Assembly: GCA_965644295.1 (NCBI GenBank)
Contig: CBFFRP010000371.1
Location: 124,001-188,000 of the forward strand
Source of the DNA: Paraphysomonas bandaiensis
Taxonomy: Eukaryota; Protista; Chrysophyceae
Direction of reading: 5' to 3'
Length of the DNA: 64,000 bases
Made by a program: the position numbers and the translations under genes. Positions 1,200 through 62,899 of this stretch are shown piece by piece (within the stretch, counting starts at the first letter, position 1; each line of letters starts with the position of its first letter). The notes below the pieces were generated by a model that was not told the DNA's origin, did no database searches, and was given only the letters and a program-made list of their open reading frames with translations.

Positions 1200-2353
1200 A
1201 AGTTACTGTCCTAACAGTACTATATGTATATATTTCAGGTTTAATTTGCAGCCGCTTGTGATAACGTTTGTTTTGTTATCTGTTTGAATTTTATATCGTG
1301 GTTGTATTATTCGTAGCAAGATTCTATTGCGCAGAATATTCGGTTTCCTGAGACACTTTCAAAGTTATCGCAGTTGCTATTGTCTCAGCAATCATTTGCT
1401 TTAGCTATTGTATAAATTTGGGAATATGATTTTAATTGCCGTTCTCGTTTACAGATGTCTTTCATTTTGAAACAATATCAACTCATATTGTTATCAGGGA
1501 ATACTTATTTCCTCCAACGCAGCAAGCCACAAGTATATATATATTACATTATCTGTATTGATTATTAACTGATTTAACCTTTGCAAGAAGATAAGGATAA
1601 AAGAGTACCAACTTTCAATAAGTACAGCAGCTTCGTACAAGGGATAAATACTATTAGCCGGAAATTTCCAACTCGAAAACGAGCTACTACTTACTAACAC
1701 AGACTTCCGATATCTTGCTTTAAGGGTATTGAATTAACACCAATATTGAATGAATAAGAATAGCGACAACAAGAAAACTTCAATGAAAGCTACAGCTAAT
1801 GTACAATGTACCCCGACTGCGAGATATTGAAATTCGTACATAAGTGTGATGATGAGTGTAAAAAAATTTCCCCGTGCTAATATGAGTGTTCTGTTGAACC
1901 CATTTCAGGTCGAACAAAAAACAAAATAGAGATAATATCTCTTAACAAAAGAAAGGAGAAGATATTTATGTTTAACTTCAAAGGACTAACGGTTACATAC
2001 TCTCTCTTCAATCTTTCTAATAATCCCTTGTCTAAATATCCTGCATAAGCACGATATTCTGGTTTGAAGTTCATATTATTATTCCCTAATCCAATTTACT
2101 GCTACGAAGTTTGATACATCGCATGTTATGGAAACTTAAGCAGTCATCTACTACAACACGTATTCCAACATATCAACCCAATTAACAAGAATTATTGATT
2201 TCATAATACAAATGATCACATAATGAAATAATATTAATCATATATATATTACACGTGACAAAACAGACACATAAAGCATCAATATAGTTTTCCATATGTT
2301 TGTAGAACTTAACAAACCGCATTCGGGGGAGCAGCAGCCTGACGGCTTGCTTG

Positions 2354-2916
2354 TCATGTCTTTACCATGCTGGCGAAATCTTGATATGACACCTTGCCGT
2401 CGTTGTCAGCATCGGCCGCAATCAGCATTGAATTTAGAAACTCATCACTACAATTTTCCCCAAGACTCGATAGCACGGCTTTCAAATCAGAAACTGATAT
2501 GAAGCCGGAGGATTTCGGGTCAAAAACTTTGAATGCTGCAGCAATGTCAGCATCTGACTCTGTCTTGGCAAGAGACATTGACATCATAGTCAAAAACTCT
2601 ATAAAATAGCATTAAGATATTATATTAATCCAGATAAAGTGAACTCACCAGGAAAATCTATGGTGCCATTCCCATCTGCATCTACTTCAGTAATCATATC
2701 TTCCAATTCTTTTTCAGATGGATCTTGTCCAAGTTGTCTCATCACTGTACCCAATTCTTTAGTACTTATTTCACCTACTCCAGCTTTATCTAAGATATAT
2801 ATATCCTTTTAATAATATAATTATATATTACTATAATAAAACACACCAAATAGAGTAAACGCCTCCTTATATTCCATAATTTGTTCCTCTGATAGAAATT
2901 TCCCATTATCTGACAT
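2354..2916 (-). CDS. Calmodulin-like four-EF-hand protein (3 exons)
   Basis: The spliced translation reads [70 protein letters not shown]...[13 protein letters not shown], with two GT-AG introns. Confidence 0.9.
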
Positions 2917-3561
2917 ATCTGATAAGGTTAACCAATAGATTGAATAGATTGAATAGATAATGAAGTAGTTATTAGTTGGATTTGATGTATTGATAGGTGA
3001 TTAACTGTCCTATTGAGCGATAGGCTACACTAGCATACATATACACACGAGTTTTATGTACACGAGACATGATTCTGGTCAGTATGATGGTGTATCGTCT
3101 ATGGTGTATTGTATCGTACAACTGTTCAAGAGTACAGATCTTATATACTGCTGTATACCATGCATGGTATACCCTACTACTGTATTCTGTATATAAAAAG
3201 ATATAGGAATTCCTATAGAAATACATACTATCCTACAGCATATATAGCAATAGTAATATGACAGAATACATAGAGTATACTCCTTATAATACATCCAAAA
3301 TATAACTTCAACACTTTTTTCTCTATCTGCTGCTGTTGAGTATAAATATCAATAACTTACCGTTGCTCTTTTCTCACAAAAAAAAAAACCAAGAAGAAGG
3401 CTAGAAATGACCAGTAAGTATATGTATATGTATGTACAGTATATATAGTCTCATATACATACATTCACATATGAAACACTCTCATTAATCAGATACTTAC
3501 ACTAAAAGGAACTCAACATATATATAAAACTCTAAAGAATACAAGGAACTTCAACAACAAT

Positions 3562-4276
3562 ATGGCTTGTGAGAATCTACCACCTCATATAGTTGCTAGA
3601 CTTCTAACAGAAATTCGTGATCTGGTATATGATTATCTTAACGGTTGTATTCTATTGGACTGATAGATTATTATAGGCTAGAAATCCTCCTGATGGAATA
3701 GAATATGTAGAGAATGATGATTGTGGGACGATAGGTGAGATACATGCTTATATTACAGGACCTGAAGAAACTCCATTTTATGGTGGGAAATTTCGTATGA
3801 AACTTGTATTATCTGAAGACTTTCCTGCTTCACCACCACGAGGATTCTTCTTAACAAAAATATATCATCCTAATATTGCAAATAATGGTACGTTAATTGA
3901 ATGTAATTTAATGTGATAATAATGATATATAGGTGATATATGTGTAAACACCTTGAAGAGAGATTGGACACCAGAAGTCACACTTAAACATGTCCTCCAA
4001 GTGATTCGATGTCTGCTTATTGTTCCGTTCCCTGAGTCATCTTTGAACGACGAAGCAGGAAAGTTGTTTATGGACAGCTATGATGAATTCGCCCGTCGTG
4101 CTCGTATCATGACACAAGTGCATGCGATCAGGGTAAGTCCTGTCGACAGCGAGGGATCGAAAAAGGTGTCTGCTGATGATTCATCTTCAACGCCCGCTGT
4201 ACGGGAAGAGGATCGACCAAATGGACAAAAAAGAAAGGCAAAGGATGCGAAAAAGAAGGCGATGAAACGGCTATAA
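3562..4276 (+). CDS. UBE2S: Ubiquitin-conjugating enzyme E2 S (3 exons)
   Basis: Contains [64 protein letters not shown], the catalytic Cys, and the basic KKKAMKRL tail typical of UBE2S. Confidence 0.9.
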
Positions 4277-4589
4277 ACCTTGTGATGTTTGTTCTCAGTG
4301 CTTTCGCAGTAATAGTCCGTTCAGGAAAAGACATCTGTCCTATTCATAGAATGATGTCGTTTTGTGACATTTGTAAGTACAACTACATTCCTGCTTTTCC
4401 TGGTTGCTGTGGTATGCTACACTTAATCATTTAGTAAGCAGAAAGAGTAATCTCTCGTTTTTCTCACGTATTGCCGTGTCAATTCTTTATGGAAACATTT
4501 CACTCATCGCATATTTTTATTACTATTAAAGTTCTTCCTCTCAACAACAACATTGGAAGTAAGCAGCGGTAGCTAGTGACTCCTAGGTA

Positions 4590-5075
4590 CCAAGTCGAGC
4601 TCTCGTGGTGACCTCTGCGCTGTCTAGAACACGCTGTGCAAAATCAGTTCTTTCACTTTTGTCGTGAGTGCTGTCGGATGTGAGCAAACTGGCATTCCTA
4701 AGCGTCTTTAGATCTTTCATCAAGATACCTGGGCGTAGACTTCCACCTTACAACCACTGATGTTGACTCCTTCACATGGTGCAAGACATACCTCCAATCC
4801 GCGAGCACGCACCTCTGCATTAAACAAGCCTCGAAAGTCGAAAGGATGTAAGTTAATGGTCATAGAGACACAGATCATCCCGGCGCTTCTCCACAAGGAG
4901 AGCAAAGACTCTTGTTGGCCCCTGTCTTGGTACAGGACTTTAGATTTCTCCTGTGCACTCTTCCGCCTAGGGCACGGCAATTATAGTTGCAATAATGAAA
5001 AATATCCCAACAATTATAATGGCATTACGTCCCAACAATTAAAACGGCATTACTATTAACGGTTAGCAGGCCCTG
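4590..5075 (-). mobile_element. Probable hAT transposon relic
   Basis: The minus strand begins CAGGGCCTG at 5075, like the other hAT ends in this window. The broken translation includes 'DFRGLFNAEV' and 'TDFAQRVLDS'. No second TIR was found. Confidence 0.35.
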
Positions 5076-50612: not shown

Positions 50613-51321
50613 ATGGTAATATTCAAGATATCCTAATTGACGCTTAGATTGCTATTATCTACTGGCCTGCAGTTCATTTTGGATAGATAAAACGGTATTA
50701 CGACTATATATGTGCACAGATGATGTTTGTGTATGCTATTGGGCATATAGCACGTACTAACCATATGGTGGTGAAATTGTACACAAGGTGTACAGCAGTA
50801 CTATGAGTATCATCATATGCAGCAGCAGCGTACGTTTGGTATATGTACGGTATACATTGCAGTATAGGCGATATATATTTATATAAGTTTTCGGGATTAA
50901 ATTGAAGCAGAAATCCTCTATTATACTTCAATACAACTACAGCTGAAATGCATATAATTGTTGTCTCAATATATGAGGCATCTTTGAACAAAAATATACA
51001 GAGGATGCCGATACGATAATAATTTGTACATGATTTTTGTACACTTCTATGGTTCAGGTACAGTGCAATCGCGTTATGGTGGACGAAATATGGATGCTCT
51101 CGTTATAGTGGACAAATTTAGGCTTGGTACGGGGATTTTTGCATAAAATCTCCCATTTTATGCATATAAGTTCATTGGTATACAGCAGTCAGTGCACTGC
51201 TGCACCTTAAACACTTCTAGACTTCGTCTTCACTTCACTTCACTTCACTCTCATCATGTGTGAGATGTCGTATAGGAGCCTTATGTATGAGTATGCGTGT
51301 AGGTGTTAGTTGCTGATAAAC

Positions 51322-54300
51322 ATGCAGTCCATTATACTAACCACAGGGATCCTACTCCTTATCTCCACACAATCCACGCTTTCTTCTCCAGTACCTGTAG
51401 AGGAGATTGATGCCCTATGGGCCCTGTATAATGACACTCATGGAGATGAGTGGTTGTGGAGAAATGAGTCATATGGAGCTCGATGGCATTTTAATACAAT
51501 CCTCACTGAAATCAACCCCTGTAACGACAATCACACTGTCTGGCAGGGCATTCAGTGCTCGAATCCGCCCGAGAACTGCACCGATGATAGTAACACGACC
51601 TGCCATATAGTTGAGTTGTATTTAGATGACTATGAATTAGCGGGCAGTCTTCCATATGAGATTGGAAACTTATCCCAACTCACGTATTTGAGGTTAGTAA
51701 ATAACTTCGAACTAGTTGGGACATTGCCGCACAGTATCATGAAATTACAGCTTCTCGAAACTCTAGATCTTGAAACCTCAAAATTGTCAGGTGCCATACC
51801 GTCATTGGTATTTGAACTGCCAAATTTAAAGCAGCTCCGTTTAGTGGAAGGGATTTTTAGTGCCATTGAAGACTCCGATTTATGTTCTGGTACTAAACTC
51901 ACGCATTTGGATTTGTCATATAATCATATATATGGAACAATCCCGGAGTGTATATTGCGATTGTCTAATCTGGATTATATTTCATTTCGGTCAAACCGTT
52001 TATCTGGACCCTGTGATATTGGCGACTGGGGGAGAATGCAAACCCTCAACTACAGGGGAAACTATTTAAATTGTACCTTTCCCACAAATGTTTTGCTGTT
52101 GCACGACTTAACTTATTTAGACTTATCCGTGAATTCCATTCATGGTACATTACCTCCGAACATTGGATCTCTTTCGAGGCTTGAATTTTTGGCCTTGGAA
52201 GAAGTTGGTATCCGTGGGTCACTACCGCTCTCTCTTGGGAATCTTGTTGAAGTAAGTGAGCTCAGGCTTACGAATAATGCACTTACGGGAAATTTGTTTT
52301 CATTGAGAAATCTATCGCAAATTCAGAATCTAGAATTAGATGGTAATTTATTCACAGGACATATTCCAGATTCAATTTACGAGTTCAACCACTTGTGCAG
52401 ACTTTATCTGTCCACTAATTTGCTCTCTGGTACAGTATCCTCCATGATATCCAACCTGAAATTAGTAGAAAGGCTTTATTTTTATGACAATGCATTAACT
52501 GGAAAGCTTCCTGATGGTCTTTCCATGCTCACATCATTGGAGTATATGGACATTTCTGATAACTATTTCACCAATAGTCTTCCGGTCGATTTCGGAATGA
52601 TGACTGCGTTAAAGAGTGTGAGTCTGAGCTCGAATTTCTTTTCTTCCTCGCTTCCGTCTTCTATAGGAAACTTAACCAACTTGGTATCCTTATATGGGGA
52701 CCAAAACTGGCTAACAGGATCTCTTCCAGAATCTATATATAATCTTGTACCATTGGCTAAAATGATGTTCAACATAAACTACCTAAGTGGGTCATTGTGC
52801 GGTGATATTGGCCGCCTTACCCGTGTGAATTACGTTGACCTCACTGATAATGCAATAACCGGACCTATACCATCATCAATAGCGAATATGTCCTCACTAC
52901 GGTATTTTGTTCTCCGCAACAACCGCATCACATCCACCCTTCCACTTTCACTGACGACCATGACATTCTTACAAAATTTAGAATTAACATCGAATATGAT
53001 ATCAGGTCCGCTACCAGCATATATTGGCGTGTCCCTTAGGTACTTGTATGTTGGTGATAATTACTTGACGGGAAGCATACCTTCTTCTCTATTTCCTGAC
53101 ATGTCGTCGTTGATCCATTTACAGCTCACTGATAACTACTTGACATCTACTATTCCGACATCTATTAGTTCATTGTCCAATCTCATATACCTTTATCTCG
53201 GGGGCAATAAGTTCACGGGGAAATTAGAGGAGGGTATTACTGAGTTGTATCGTTTGCAAGATGTCGTTCTGGATACGAACTCTCTTTCAGGTTCTGTGCC
53301 TGCGTCTCTTTCACAACTTACTCTCCTAAATTTTCTTCAGTTGCACCATAATAATTTTGAAGGGACGTTGCCATCATCGCTGAGTAACCTTCAGCAGTTG
53401 CGTGTGCTTCAAGTAAACAACAATGAGATTTCAGGACATGTGTCCCACATATTTGACTCACCTCTCTTCAAAAACCTTGTGAATGTAGATATGAGTACGA
53501 ATCGATTTAGCGGAATGGTGCCGCAGGATCTGTTCATGATTCCCAGTATTCAGACGATTGCATTGAGTTCGAATTGTTTTGAAGGAACACTTCCTTTATC
53601 AATGTGTAATGCATCTCAACTCAGTGTGATTTCAATGGATGGATTGCGAGCTGCGCGCGATTGTCCTCGAACTTTTAGACTTCCTTTTTCAGGAGCTCTA
53701 ATATCACTTTCCACACACACTGCTGGTACTCTTCCCAGTTGTCTCTGGGAACTCCCCAATCTGAAAGTGCTCCATGTGGCCGCGAATTTGCTCACTGGAA
53801 ATCTTAAAGTAGATCGTATTACTCCAACACTGTTGAATGTGAGTCTTGCTCATAATCACTTGGAAGGAACTATTCCCGATGCAGTTGATAAACATTACTT
53901 TCAAACACTCGATCTATCTAACAACAAGATCACTGGAGTTGCCAGTAACAGATATTATCCTGATGTTGTCAAAAATGATTCAGATTCGGTTTTTATGACG
54001 AAACTGACCTTAATAGTGAACCGATTGTCTGGAGGTGTACCGCGAGGACTATCTTACGCCAGGAGGATAAATATACTCACTGGAAATTTGTTTGGGTGTG
54101 ACGATTTACCCTCGCATGACCCCCATAGGAGTGAGTACAACTGTGGCTCAATAGAAATGGATGAGTCGCTATATGTTCTTCTTGCTGCTGTGGTGGCGAT
54201 AGCTGTAATCGGCGGAACTCCGTACCTATTTTGGTTACGGCGTCGCGGAGAAGCCTCTGGTATCAGTGATTCTGATATACTAGAAGCAGACAAGGATAAT

Positions 54301-56084
54301 AATATATCCCTCCCTGCTCTGTACCGCCTTGTACAATTATCTCTCTCTCAGGCTAAACTATTACCGTGGGACGTAATGCCCTATTTAAAAGCCTTTTTGT
54401 GTATGCTTGACGCATTTCAGTACTACACAATTCTTATTGCCAGTTGCGGTGTAGTTTTTTGTCTTCCTCTATATGTACTCAAGATAATTGCGGATGAGAG
54501 CGAGGGAGTTGGAATTGTAACGCATACTCACACGTACCGATGGATACTAACTGCAGGATTTATCACTGGTCCGATTCCAGCTACCATGCTTCTCGTTGCT
54601 TGGTCTGTAGGTGCCACTATATTGGTTTTAGGGCTGCGTCAATCTGTGTGTAATTCCCAACGCAAAGTGAAAATTGAGCACACGTCGAGTAGTTACGAAA
54701 ATGAATTAAATAGTTCTACCGTGGTTCGGTCACGGTATAACTACCCGCGAGTTGCTGCCTTAGTCATATTTAATACAATCATCGTGGGCACTGTTAATGC
54801 TCTGTACGTGTATTCCTCTACTATATATATCACGTCCGCGATACGACTTACAATTCAGTTCGCTTTGGCCATATTTAAGGTATAAACTATCTATCCTCTA
54901 TTGTTATTATTCTAATGTGTATGTTGAAGCTCTTCTGGAACTTTGCAATAGTTCCCTCCATTGTTCTTCCGTTTATCGACAGTCCCCGGCAGCGTGCACG
55001 ACTAAAAGTACTTATTCTTTTGATGAACAGTATAATTGCCCCCCTTTTTGTACTAGCAGTCTCAGGTCCATCGTGCTTTCGTGATTTGTTTTTTCTGCCT
55101 CCGACATTGTCATCATCATACAGTTATGAAGAGTGTGTAGCCTTCTCGTTGTCATCTGTTACAGTTTGTGACGAGTTTGAAACTGTGGTATCTACCACTG
55201 ACCCGTTCCATCCTCCTTTCAATTACAACAATCTCTGCACCTCAAATGTCATCACTGCGTATGTTCCGGTTTACATATATACTTACTCTTTCCTTCTACT
55301 TCTTCCATGCGTACTACTTGTAATATATAAATATGCTCGCTGGAGTGATTTGCCTGTGTGGATAGTCAAGTATACTCCTATGATTCTCTGGCCATTTCGA
55401 CTATCATCCTCAGGAGAGTATGTACACACTTCAGATTGTGAAGACCATATGTTAGAGGCACATTTGACAAAGTTGAAGTTATTAACGAGTCATTTCCTAC
55501 GAAGTGATATGGTAGTATCGTCTTTCGCTCACCACCTTGCAGTTCTATTGTCATTTGGGTTACTAAGCCCTGTCCTAACTATTGAAATTGCAGCTGCATT
55601 GTGCTTATCGACATTCCAGTGGCGATTTTTCATTGGAAGATTTCTGCTTCATCGCTCTCATTCTCATGGTGTCAGTGTATCAGCAGGTGACAGAGAAGCA
55701 CCACACCATATTGCCAATCCACTACATGATCGTTCCGTTATTCTCAGGGATGAGAGTCTGAAAAAACTGAATTTTGCTGTCGAAGAGGCTGCGAGTTCGT
55801 TTGTTAGTTGTGTCGGACCTGTGATGTGTGTTACGTCGATGTTTATATGTTCGCTCTGTTGGGATATTGTCAGTGATAGACGTGGTTGGCAGGTTGGAAT
55901 TTATGTACCTGTGTTTAGCTTTGGAACACTTGCAATTCTATTTACGCTAGTTTATCTTCGTTTCAAACCGACTACAGCATTTCTAGATTTCACTACGGGC
56001 GATGGTAAAACTGATGGAGTTTTTGAACTGGAGCTTCGACAAAGCAATTGGAATCAACAAGATGTGAGTAATCCGATCCTGTAA
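51322..56084 (+). CDS. Large LRR receptor-like protein with multi-pass (about 10 TM) C-terminal domain, no kinase (2 exons)
   Basis: Signal peptide, a plant-type LRR N-cap (ALWALY..T.G..W...PC..WQGIQC), roughly 30 LxxLxLxxNxLxGxIP repeats, then repeated hydrophobic segments. There is an intron at about 54880-54929. Confidence 0.9.
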
Positions 56085-56257: not shown

Positions 56258-56390
56258 CATGTTGATGAAACTTTACTTTCAAACCTTCGATTTACCTAAC
56301 AACAAGATCACTGGAATTGCCAGTAGCGGCTATTATCCGGATGTTTCTTATGACAAATACCTGACATTAATAGTCAATCGATTATCTGGA
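56258..56390 (+). pseudogene. Decayed LRR-TM paralogue, left fragment
   Basis: Similar to about 53882-54030 (YFQTFDLPNNKITGIAS..YYPDV..LTLIVNRLSG). Confidence 0.85.
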
Positions 56391-56539: not shown

Positions 56540-56832
56540 TGTTGAGATCTGAAGATTCTATATACTTGCAATTGAGTGCAGTATTATGTGAGATGCAAGG
56601 ATCGAAAGATATATATGTAATTAGTACATTATATTATGTAGTATGAAACTGAAGTAGAAGTGGATGACTATACAGGATACGATCACTGAGTGGGTGGTTT
56701 GTACACTATAGTAGTAAATGAATGGTGTTGAACACATCGAACACAACTTAGGTTCTTTATCATGTAATGTTTATAATTTCATCTTATCAGTTGAGAATAG
56801 TAAACCTTAGCAAATAATGTCAACTTCTGTTA
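56540..56832 (+). repeat. 5' LTR (293 bp, TG...TA)
   Basis: Identical by eye to 61540-61832. Confidence 0.95.
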
Positions 56833-59800
56833 TGGTAGCGAATGCTAGTTGTAGGGATGGGGAAGATGACAAGAAGCTACGGTTTGACAAGAACCAAGCA
56901 GACTATTCAGCGAGAAAAATCAAGATGCATCTAATGAAGAAAAACCGAAACCATCTTGGCTTGGAGGACCCGCCAGCCGGAGGAAGGAATTTAGAGTCAT
57001 GGAGAGAGCGTAATGATACCTGTGTTAGTACTATTTGGGAGGCTTGCGAGCATGACCCTGATGTGTTGGAGGTAGCCAATCAATATTTGGAGGGGAAGGC
57101 AATTTTACCTGCTGATGATCCTGCTAAGGAGGTGTTATCCAGTGAGCTCCTTCAGACACTGGTTGATAGGTTCAGAGGCGAGATTGGGACTGTATTGGAG
57201 AAGACTACGGCAGAATACCATTCGTTCAAAATAAGGCCGGGGGAAAAGGTGTCTGTTGGGGTAGATCGACTGAACGGTATAATCCAGAAGCTCATAAAAT
57301 TGGGACAACCGCAGACAGAGGCAAGTAAATTAGCAAAGATAAAAGCAGCGCTGCAGATAGAGGAATTACATGATTTATGGATGTCGGTAGCGATGATGCC
57401 TAAAGCAACAACTACATTTGATTCGGTGAAAGAGGCTTGTGAAGAGTATGACGAGGCTATGACGCAGCTGAAGAAACTAAAGGGAGACAAATCTGAAGAG
57501 ATCAATTTTACGGCGTCGAAGGAGCCAGTGGTTTGTTCATTTTGTCGGAAGAAGGGACACGTAGCAGCGAATTGTTATGCTAAGGAACGACAAAGAAAAA
57601 TGGATAAGTTCAAAAGAAAAGGGAAGACAAAGGAAAAGGCTTCGAAGAGTGTGCAGCAGCCAGGATCAAAGGATTATACTGGTTGTCATATCTGTGGAGA
57701 TTTTAGTCATAAAGCCCGACAGTGCAAGTCGAAAAAACGGAAGAACATAAAAAACCCGGATAATGAGAATCCTCGAAAATCGAACAGGAAATTCGAGACA
57801 GAATGGAAGAAATACGTCAACGACGGAGAGTCGTCGGATGATGAAGCGAATATGTTTGGAGAAGAGGTTTTGCTATCGGTGGATACGTCGGAAGAACCTC
57901 GTGTATATCTGGACAGTTGTGCAAGTAAAAGACTGTTTATAGTAAAGGATAAAATTGCACTGGAGTCATTTACTCCTGAGTTTGGGGCAATCCAACTAAC
58001 TAGAAAGGGTTCTCAATTGGAGACACAGGGGGCTGGTACATTCGGGGAATGGAGAGACATCAGAGTTAGTGAAGAAGCGGTGAAGAACATTGTGTCAGGA
58101 GGAATGCTGAGATCAATGGGATACGGATTACAACTGCTTCGAAAGCCTAAAATCGTGGAATTGGACTCTGGAAACGAGGTGTTGACTGGAGAGTACGATG
58201 AGCATGGAGGAATGCCGTATGTGGACTTGATGGAGGTGTTAAATCTGCCAAATGTGTCTATGTGCAATCAGATGGAGGAGGTAAATTTGTCGGATAATAC
58301 AGGACAAGATGCGTTGGATCGCTTACATGAGCGTACTGGACATGTCTCGAAATCGAAGTTATTAGAAGCTCACCGACACATGTTATTCAGAGGATCAGGA
58401 CTACAACGACATCACCTTTCGAAGGCAAAGGAGAAGAGTTGCAAGAAACCCCTGTGTAAATGGTGTGCCAAGGCGAAGATAACCAGGCATTCGTTCAAAT
58501 CACGGGACAACGAAGAGCTAAGCGCAGTCAGGTTTCTGGAACGAGTGACAGCGGACATCTCAGTCTACCTGAATTGTGAATCCAGACAAGGGTATAAGTA
58601 CGTGCTCCTATTCACGGACTTAGCAACAAAGATGATATGGGAATATGGATTGAGGACTCGAAGCGGAGAGGAGGTGTTCAAATGTCTACGACACTTGTGC
58701 GAGGTCCACTTAGTGAAGTACGAGGGGTGGAACCGTATAGTGGAGTATCATGCCGATGGAGGATCCGAACTTATTAGTCAGCAGATAAGAGAGTATCTGT
58801 TGCAGCGATATGGGACTCGGGTGTCACATACAACACGAGACACGCCAGAGCTCAACGCGGTGTCTGAGAGGAAATTCCGAACAATTGGGGAGATGACACT
58901 GACGATGTTGACGGCATCTGGACTTCCAAAGTCGTTCTGGTTTGATGCTTATCAAACTGCATGTTACATTGTGCGACGAATGCCAACTCGGACGTGGCAA
59001 GGATGGATGTCTCCATATGAGTGTGTCCCAGGGGGAGCGTTCCCAGCCTATCGTGGCTACGGAAATGGGGGTGCAAAGCATATGTGCTAACACCCAAGGC
59101 CGACAGGAGGAAGGACTGGGAGGACAAAGCAATGACAGGTTATTTCATAGGGTATCCAGCTGATCGAAAAGGATACAAGGTGCTAGTGGGGGACACCGTA
59201 GTACACTCTGTACATGTATTATTTGATGAATCGGTACCTGAGAGGTCTCAGGATTATTATAGAGAGCTGGAGGAGGCTCAAGTGGCTATAGATCCCGAGG
59301 CTCGTCAACCGGGTGAGTTTGAGTATCTTATCGGAAAGCACCATGAGGATGGTGGTCTGCTATACAAGACTAACAGAGTGGTGATAAGGAAGGGACTTAT
59401 TGTGGGATACCGGTCGTTGGTTACTGGTAACCAGGTTCAAGTGGAGGATAAAACTCCTATTCATATTGCTGACATCAAGAAGATGACAGAGGATCTTGCG
59501 CAGAGGGTGGTTAGGGCCAGAGTTACTGACAACCGTGACGGCGGTATCAGCGGAGTGGTGCCACAGCAGTCGGAAAGTGGGCAGGTGCAGCCCCAGGCTG
59601 ACTCAGCATTACCTTCGGGGGAAGGGGCCCCTGCCGAGAATCATCCGCACGGCAAACGCGCAAGAACTCCAAGGACGGTAACGAATGTGTCGGTGTTAGG
59701 ACAAATCCATCATTTGAGTGATGAGAGTGATGTGAGTGACCTTTTACAGGAGGCAGACTCAGTGTGGATGTCAGCGGAAGAGTCGACAGTGCCTCAGACA

Positions 59801-62293: not shown

Positions 62294-62396
62294 ATCTGGA
62301 GGTGTACCGCAAGGGCTATTTTACGCCAGGAGGATGAACATACAGCCTTTCTAGATTTCGCTACGGTCGATGGTAAAACTGGTGGGGTTTTTGAAA
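62294..62396 (+). pseudogene. Decayed LRR-TM paralogue, right fragment (internally deleted)
   Basis: Continues the match to about 54026-54075, then jumps to match about 55972-56027. Confidence 0.85.
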
Positions 62397-62899
62397 GATC
62401 GATAGTCACTATACGCAGTACGCACTGGCGTTAGCTCTACAGGAAATCGATGATCATGAATCGGATCTAAGTCGTCCATCGACGGAATTCAATAAAATTA
62501 GTGTTTCAAAGTCTGGCACACCATTGTTTCCAACCAGAGCTGACGCAGCACGGCATATTCAAAGTAGCGATAGATCGCTGCAGAAGAACTGAGTTTAGCC
62601 CTTCAAGGAAGTGATAATGTTTAAGAATGGCGTTGCTGTGTTACCAGATGGGTCAAGGGTTTCCGAGCACGACTGATTGCTGGATGGTTTATTGAATGGA
62701 ATTTCGCTAAGGAAATTGATGGTGTAGGAGATTTAGATTCCGCCTGGGTTGACGGTAAGAGTTATTTTAAGCAATTTTAATCAGCAAGTTGTTGTGAGGA
62801 ATCCAATCCTTTAAAAATCATGAAAACTAGAAGTAATTGCTATAGAGATTGTTTTTCACTTTAACTGTAATGAAATTGTACGCAGTATAATCCCTCAAC

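Follow-up and report, generated by a model that had tools for sequence, protein, structure and literature searches.

The OSCA/TMEM63, TMEM16 and TMC proteins, which play key roles in osmosensing, mechanosensation, hearing and lipid scrambling, are all gated, to our knowledge, by membrane tension, Ca2+ or separate tether proteins. Medrano-Soto et al. described seven families in the Anoctamin superfamily, all with domains of Pfam clan CL0416, and did not mention a fusion to leucine-rich repeats (LRRs) (PMC5868767), while the LRR expansion described in Tetrahymena is a different one (PMC6564038). Our literature searches did not turn up any LRR fusion to an OSCA/TMEM16-type fold. Here, we analyze a gene with this architecture in the chrysophyte Paraphysomonas bandaiensis, located on the + strand at positions 51322 to 56084 of a stretch of 64,000 nucleotides (nt), hereinafter the window, which corresponds to positions 124,001 to 188,000 of contig CBFFRP010000371.1 (C371:124001-188000) in the 62.6-Mb genome. 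We consider it fairly probable that its product is a cell-surface receptor, in which an LRR ectodomain is joined via a conserved module and an additional transmembrane helix (TM0) to a core with the OSCA/TMEM63/TMEM16/TMC fold, and in which the LRRs gate a permeation pathway.

Predicted fold and topology of the membrane module

Searches and folding were carried out per exon. For the complete membrane domain, we relied on the intron-free paralogue L017:5216-7120, which shares ~30% identity with the window protein; of the window protein itself, exon 2 alone was modeled, with AlphaFold2 and no templates. The AlphaFold2 model of the paralogue membrane domain, obtained from a 79-sequence alignment and likewise without templates, reached a predicted local distance difference test (pLDDT) value of 86.3 and a predicted TM-score (pTM) of 0.86. 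The Foldseek comparison of this model with the PDB returned almost only TMEM16F, nhTMEM16, afTMEM16, TMEM16K, Ist2, OSCA3.1 and TMC-1/2, with weak values (E of ~1e-2, TM-score of 0.3 to 0.4), and since Foldseek alone was weak, VIA-align was required for the fold assignment. In the structure alignment of the predicted bundle, OSCA/TMEM63, TMEM16 and TMC superimposed and nothing else rose above background. Moreover, two models built with different first sequences gave an identical, exclusive list of matches, separated by a wide gap from unrelated chains.

The OSCA/TMEM63 chains were the top scorers and the sole chains matching TM0. Their alignments run from model residue 4, paired with chain residues 2 to 46, whereas those of the TMEM16 chains start at model residue ~64 to 76; it follows that the first helix of the model is the counterpart of TM0. 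An OSCA/TMEM63-type TM0 puts the N terminus outside, which suits an N-terminal ectodomain. According to the predicted structure, the module thus presents both the ten-helix core of the superfamily, with its characteristic packing and superimposable on solved members, and the extra N-terminal TM0 with an outside N terminus found in OSCA/TMEM63, and the assignment to an OSCA/TMEM63-like 11-helix fold is supported at the level of these models. The first-pass annotation of this DNA, which had proposed a TMC/OSCA/TMEM16-like fold, had named a failed superposition, a match to a G-protein-coupled receptor (GPCR) or another known fold, or far fewer helices as outcomes that would speak against it; the superposition holds, 11 helices are predicted, and neither a GPCR nor any other fold is a competing match.

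In the ESM Atlas, 26 of the 30 clusters nearest to exon 2 of the window gene are Anoctamin, with scores of up to 0.91 (200 of 256 features), and the remaining four, which are unnamed, probably represent the LRR-membrane family itself; all ten best family-bearing matches of the paralogue are Anoctamin as well. The shape search of the same Atlas yielded noise alone (TM-score of <0.3).

Hydropathy indicates ~10 hydrophobic segments, the number initially annotated, and the structure models contain 11 helices, namely, TM0 and the 10-helix core. The helix positions of the window protein reported here are those of the paralogue model, transferred via the family alignment A2, and all features lie on the + strand. 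TM0 (residues 951 to 974; 54172..54243) is the extra helix, with its N-terminal end outside, that links the ectodomain to the core. It is followed by a segment that ends with exon 1 (residues 986 to 1186; 54277..54879) and comprises a cytosolic helix (986 to 1016), TM1 (1020 to 1057), TM2 (1084 to 1116), TM3 (1138 to 1167) and the first half of TM4 (1172 to 1197), a helix that is split by the intron. The second half of TM4 and TM5 (1205 to 1231) are encoded at the beginning of exon 2 (residues 1187 to 1231; 54930..55064), where the exon-2 model has a pLDDT of 92 to 97 and N1219 and P1224 are nearly invariant. The extracellular loop between TM5 and TM6 (residues 1232 to 1288; 55065..55235) is predicted to form a beta-hairpin (strands E63-74 and E78-89 of the exon-2 model) and contains C1235, C1255 and C1266, while TM6 (1289 to 1321; 55236..55334) is opened by C1289 and presents the conserved residues C1289, S1291 and P1299. 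These four cysteines occupy columns that are 97 to 100% conserved in the family, in agreement with the Cys-containing loop that had been noticed late in the membrane part. The helix that had been quoted after that loop corresponds to the TM7-TM8 hairpin (residues 1378 to 1434; 55503..55673), placed by conservation and helix mapping, with TM7 at 1378 to 1398, TM8 at 1400 to 1434 and the residues F1395, G1396, P1400 and R1423, including an invariant Gly and an invariant Pro. By the same means, TM9 (1476 to 1504) and TM10 (1511 to 1549) were assigned to residues 1476 to 1549 (55797..56018), with the conserved residues D1498 and D1502 located toward the outer end of TM9. A short cytosolic tail, with low pLDDT, no Pfam match and no effector domain, and the stop codon complete the gene (56019..56084).

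The density of Lys and Arg is 0.109 in the loops predicted inside and 0.044 in those predicted outside, and this positive-inside count, together with the signal peptide and the LRR ectodomain, indicates an N-outside topology. Cys is enriched only in the TM5-TM6 loop, which is predicted outside. Furthermore, the window protein retains nearly every residue that is conserved in at least 75% of the family, including all of the conserved membrane residues of exon 1 (T1067, Y1072, W1074, G1083, N1151, Y1162, Q1179 and F1185). In particular, we could notice conserved polar residues in four consecutive helices, N1151 in TM3, Q1179 in TM4, N1219 in TM5 and S1291 in TM6, and an invariant Gly-Pro pair at the turn between TM7 and TM8.

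Gene structure, ectodomain and family

The window contains two + strand open reading frames (ORFs), 51310-54885 and 54915-56084, which join via a GT..AG intron into a two-exon gene at 51322-56084, precisely where the first-pass annotation had placed it. Exon 1 (51322-54879) encodes 1186 amino acids and exon 2 (54930-56084) encodes 384 plus the stop codon, for a predicted spliced product of 1570 amino acids. The 50-nt intron (54880..54929), identified by direct reading of the sequence and conserved in tandem copy 2, falls within TM4, and reading through it leads to a stop codon at 54883-54885. Compared with homologues and intron-free paralogues, the junction is seamless: in the 1625-amino-acid protein P0016, which comes from a different sample, residue 1186 of exon 1 pairs with residue 1202 and residue 3 of exon 2 with residue 1205; in alignment A2, exon 1 ends and exon 2 starts in the adjacent columns 611 and 612; and in the intron-free paralogues the frame is continuous across the position of the junction. 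The contig carrying P0016 measures 5370 nt and has one uninterrupted frame of 1625 amino acids, which is compatible with a transcript origin without proving it, as a poly-A is absent.

The first ATG of ORF 51310-54885 opens a hydrophobic, signal-peptide-like N terminus (residues 1 to ~22; 51322..51387), which is followed by a Cys-containing, LRRNT-like cap. The variable part of the ectodomain (residues ~23 to 740; 51388..53541) consists of this N-cap and ~26 plant-type LRRs of 24 residues, delimited on the basis of Pfam LRR hits, spacing, PDB matches and substitution rates; in total, the window protein has ~30 LRRs with a spacing of ~24 residues (32 regular-expression matches, two of which are not LRRs), and the initial description of a signal peptide and about 30 plant-type LRRs therefore stands. 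On exon 1, Pfam recognized LRR families alone (LRR_8, LRR_1, LRR_14 and LRR_4, with E values of 1e-25 to 1e-40), and on the membrane part and tail it recognized nothing; as had been annotated, Pfam detects no kinase or other cytosolic effector. The best sequence matches of the ectodomain in the PDB are the ectodomains of plant peptide receptors, GSO1 (6e-102) and FLS2 (1e-95), followed by ERL2, MIK2, PEPR1, TDR and BRI1. Tandem 24-residue LRRs of the plant consensus behind a putative signal peptide are what defines a plant-type LRR receptor ectodomain, and the window protein has them.

The membrane-proximal part of the ectodomain (residues ~741 to 950; 53542..54171), delimited by family-wide conservation, contains the final LRRs as well as a non-LRR island, in which Cys residues are conserved, and, next to the membrane, a CGS motif. 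In 55 family members, these ~200 residues show column-wise conservation, including the island and its set of conserved Cys, whereas the distal LRRs vary in number; the Asp, Cys and Ser columns ahead of TM0 are nearly invariant in the family. A constant membrane-proximal stretch under variable distal repeats is expected of a constant coupling module below a variable sensor, and this conserved region may act as a coupling or stalk module.

Two further tandem copies lie 18 and 28 kb downstream of the window gene. Compared with copy 2, the ratio of nonsynonymous to synonymous substitution rates (dN/dS) is 0.09 for the membrane exon 2 and rises to 0.27 over the membrane-coding portion of exon 1 and to 0.42 over the LRRs, while the intron differs at 3 of 50 positions, a rate above that of the flanking exons; these sequence comparisons indicate strong purifying selection on the membrane exon. 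This dN/dS of 0.09 between tandem copies, together with 3085 homologous cluster representatives (see below), makes the gene more than a chance reading frame, and the window contains at 51322-56084 a real, constrained gene. In copy 2 (G000:C371:191500-199500, L032; ~4 to 11 kb past the window end), nt 1465-4763 of the gene match at 98.8% in forward orientation; its initial 1462 nt are found inverted, with a match of 95.1%, and the promoter and N-terminal LRRs are thereby flipped. Copy 3 (G000:C371:206500-214500, L033), on the minus strand, is 96 to 97% identical, differs at the extreme 3' end and, in comparison with the window copy, lacks ~560 nt of LRR sequence (~187 amino acids, ~8 LRRs), a deletion that suggests a change in repeat number by unequal recombination. 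With copy 2 inverted in part and copy 3 deleted in part, the window copy is the intact one of the three. Downstream of it, the window also contains two short paralogue remnants ~6 kb apart, one at 56268-56390, with 62% protein identity to residues 857 to 904 of the gene, and one at 62342-62428, 59% identical to exon-2 residues 349 to 374 in the C-terminal tail; a copia-type retrotransposon frame (56817-59090) lies between them, and together they look like a family member destroyed by insertion.

Outside the locus, word-indexed protein searches were nearly fruitless, with no match for the membrane part of exon 1 and a single 296-amino-acid fragment for the 79-sequence profile. For this reason, an exhaustive HMMER search was needed, in which a profile of eight paralogous membrane domains, run against 1.84 billion cluster representatives, retrieved 3085 of them at E<=1e-3 and 1126 at E<=1e-30. 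Where homologues are named, they are called "hypothetical protein" or "Leucine-rich repeat (LRR) protein." The six full-length homologues that were scanned all present the LRR-plus-membrane-domain layout and no further Pfam domain. Among 119 homologues in which the membrane domain is present from its start, the long N-terminal regions are LRR rich, with one exception (a fragment without its start), and the C-terminal tails after the membrane domain measure 0 to 146 amino acids.

Counting paralogues genome-wide, a check already suggested by the first-pass annotation, gave ~15 loci with the membrane domain of the LRR-membrane family in the 62.6-Mb genome, in which the Anoctamin hidden Markov model (HMM) detects at least 12 canonical loci and the RSN1_7TM HMM ~8. 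Three branches of the fold therefore occur together in one protist genome (at least 12 anoctamin, ~8 OSCA/RSN1_7TM and ~15 LRR-membrane loci). At one position, a member of the LRR-membrane family (C17:98084-99568, +) and a canonical anoctamin gene (C17:104941-106311, -) stand on opposite strands ~5 kb apart, which may be a coincidence.

Proposed receptor model and alternative explanations

If the product is an LRR-gated receptor, by analogy with its structural relatives the membrane module would form a permeation pathway along TM3 to TM7, and the permeant would most likely be cations, as in OSCA/TMEM63, lipid being less likely. Binding of a ligand to the LRRs, or force on the LRRs acting as a tether, would be relayed by the conserved stalk and TM0 and would open the pathway, and the receptor would signal directly via ion flux, with no kinase step. 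We count the conserved polar residues of TM3 to TM6 and the Gly-Pro pair at the TM7-TM8 turn in favor of such a pathway, since TM3 to TM7 are largely the pore- or groove-lining helices of the OSCA/TMEM63/TMEM16/TMC superfamily.

A number of results weigh against this model. At E<=10, Pfam gave no Anoctamin, RSN1_7TM or TMC match for the membrane domain; hmmsearch of the PDB with the membrane domain returned nothing; the genome-wide scans with the Anoctamin and RSN1_7TM HMMs missed every locus of the family; and hhalign against an OSCA alignment (five sequences, the genome's own OSCA genes and three homologues) and against single anoctamin or OSCA ORFs, all of them shallow templates, gave probabilities of ~1% or less, which in view of the templates is weak evidence against homology. 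The motif likeness to TMC and OSCA that had been judged by eye is accordingly nonsignificant by hhalign, although the best local pairing does set the TM7 motif of the family on the TM7 helix of OSCA (P of 0.19, nonsignificant). Sequence-profile similarity to the Anoctamin, RSN1_7TM and TMC models was thus not found, and language-model features alone point to Anoctamin. The fold itself comes from AlphaFold2 models, that of the complete domain being built on a paralogue with ~30% identity. Furthermore, to judge from its other members, the superfamily fold alone would be no proof of function, as scramblases occur among them and Ist2 acts, as far as is known, mainly in membrane tethering.

These last cases correspond to two other explanations of the same architecture. 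The module could be a lipid scramblase, or a dual channel-scramblase, with the LRRs controlling the exposure or mixing of lipids, for instance, during prey contact, mating or membrane repair; we regard this as unlikely, given that OSCA/TMEM63 chains score highest and alone match TM0 and that the acidic Ca2+-binding residues by which TMEM16 scramblases are activated are absent family-wide. Somewhat less likely still, it could be a multipass anchor that transports nothing, or a platform binding partners, for an LRR protein devoted to adhesion or recognition and signaling through other proteins. The occurrence among the structural matches of Ist2, a TMEM16-fold protein with its known role chiefly as a tether, would fit such an anchor, as would the short cytosolic loops and tails and the fact that neither a gating ligand nor a regulatory site could be identified; however, a single helix would suffice for passive anchoring, whereas the polar and helix-breaking residues on TM3 to TM7 are conserved family-wide and the dN/dS of the membrane exon reveals strong purifying selection.

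It is also conceivable, but in our opinion very improbable, that AlphaFold2 has reproduced a known helical arrangement as an artefact or that the gene is a nonfunctional member of a decaying tandem array. No sequence-profile method confirmed the homology, and both neighboring copies are rearranged, one by an inversion and the other by a deletion. Against an artefact stand the high pLDDT and pTM obtained without templates and the agreement of two separate models on one exclusive match list, far removed from unrelated chains; against decay stand the open frame of the window copy, its retention of nearly every family-conserved residue, the purifying selection acting on it and the numerous homologues with the same layout.

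The LRR-gated receptor remains the explanation that we favor, and it may be extended, as a more tentative proposal that we would hold somewhat short of probable, to a hitherto unrecognized and widespread class of receptor-channels in marine protists, in which a pore of the OSCA/TMEM63 type is gated directly by its own LRR solenoid, either through a ligand or because the solenoid works as an integral spring or tether attached to prey, a mate, scales or matrix. Under ligand gating, this would be the first ligand-gated member of the OSCA/TMEM16-type fold, and under tether or spring gating, it would be a counterpart, in a single chain, of the TMC tip-link apparatus. A branch with a large ligand-binding ectodomain of its own would demonstrate that the fold can be driven from outside the cell. 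It would also allow protists to convert recognition at the surface into ion flux without a kinase, and it would explain the role of many "LRR receptor-like" genes lacking a kinase in marine algae and flagellates. The LRR-membrane family, with its 3085 cluster representatives, is without a Pfam model, and its definition alone would lead to the re-annotation of proteins by the thousands; both electrophysiology and cryo-electron microscopy can put the architecture to a direct test.

Comparison with known systems

LRRs share one chain with a multipass signaling or channel module in the LGR-type LRR-GPCRs, in polycystin-1 and in LRRC8/VRAC. The LGRs have a 7-TM GPCR module, polycystin-1 has a TRP-like module and few LRRs, and LRRC8 has a 4-TM pannexin-like pore followed by C-terminal LRRs in the cytosol; we know of no OSCA/TMEM16 fold in any of them. 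For the window protein, a GPCR-type LRR receptor was ruled out, as there is no 7-TM match.

With the plant LRR receptor kinases (RLKs) and receptor-like proteins (RLPs), such as GSO1, FLS2, ERL, MIK2 and BRI1, the window protein shares the class of the ectodomain, with plant-type 24-residue LRRs (E values of 6e-102 to 1e-50), as well as the signal peptide, the Cys-containing N-cap and the non-LRR island near the membrane. However, the plant receptors have one membrane helix and a kinase or a short tail, whereas the window protein has an 11-helix module of the channel type and no kinase; on these grounds, an LRR-RLK or RLP was ruled out.

Different from TMEM16/anoctamin proteins, which have a structured cytosolic N terminus, the window protein has its N terminus outside, with a signal peptide and ~930 residues of LRR ectodomain, and its TM0 has no counterpart in that family, including nhTMEM16, afTMEM16 and Ist2. 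The Ca2+ site of TMEM16, formed by conserved acidic residues of TM6, TM7 and TM8, is absent in the LRR-membrane family, because no acidic residues are conserved on these helices: among 78 sequences, and with helix equivalence taken from the fold alignment, the maximum Asp/Glu fraction per column is 0.06 in TM6, 0.38 in TM7 (at the helix end) and 0.23 in TM8.

In OSCA/TMEM63, a large cytosolic domain (PHM7_cyt) is inserted between TM2 and TM3, where the LRR-membrane family has a loop of ~13 to 40 residues instead (13 in the modeled paralogue and ~20 to 40 in the window protein), and the three Pfam domains RSN1_TM, PHM7_cyt (PF14703) and RSN1_7TM are all without a match in the LRR-membrane protein. 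OSCA begins at TM0, whereas the window protein has an LRR ectodomain of ~930 residues ahead of it; in addition, its TM5-TM6 loop contains a beta-hairpin rich in disulfides. The window gene was also rejected as a canonical anoctamin or OSCA gene, since the HMMs of both families miss it. The absence of the TMEM16 Ca2+ site and of the OSCA cytosolic domain sets the LRR-membrane proteins apart as a separate family, a new family with a new architecture inside a known superfamily. As for TMC, its Pfam domain has no match in the window protein at E<=10, and, whereas the tether of TMC1/2 consists of separate proteins, the ectodomain of the window protein is part of the same chain as its membrane module.

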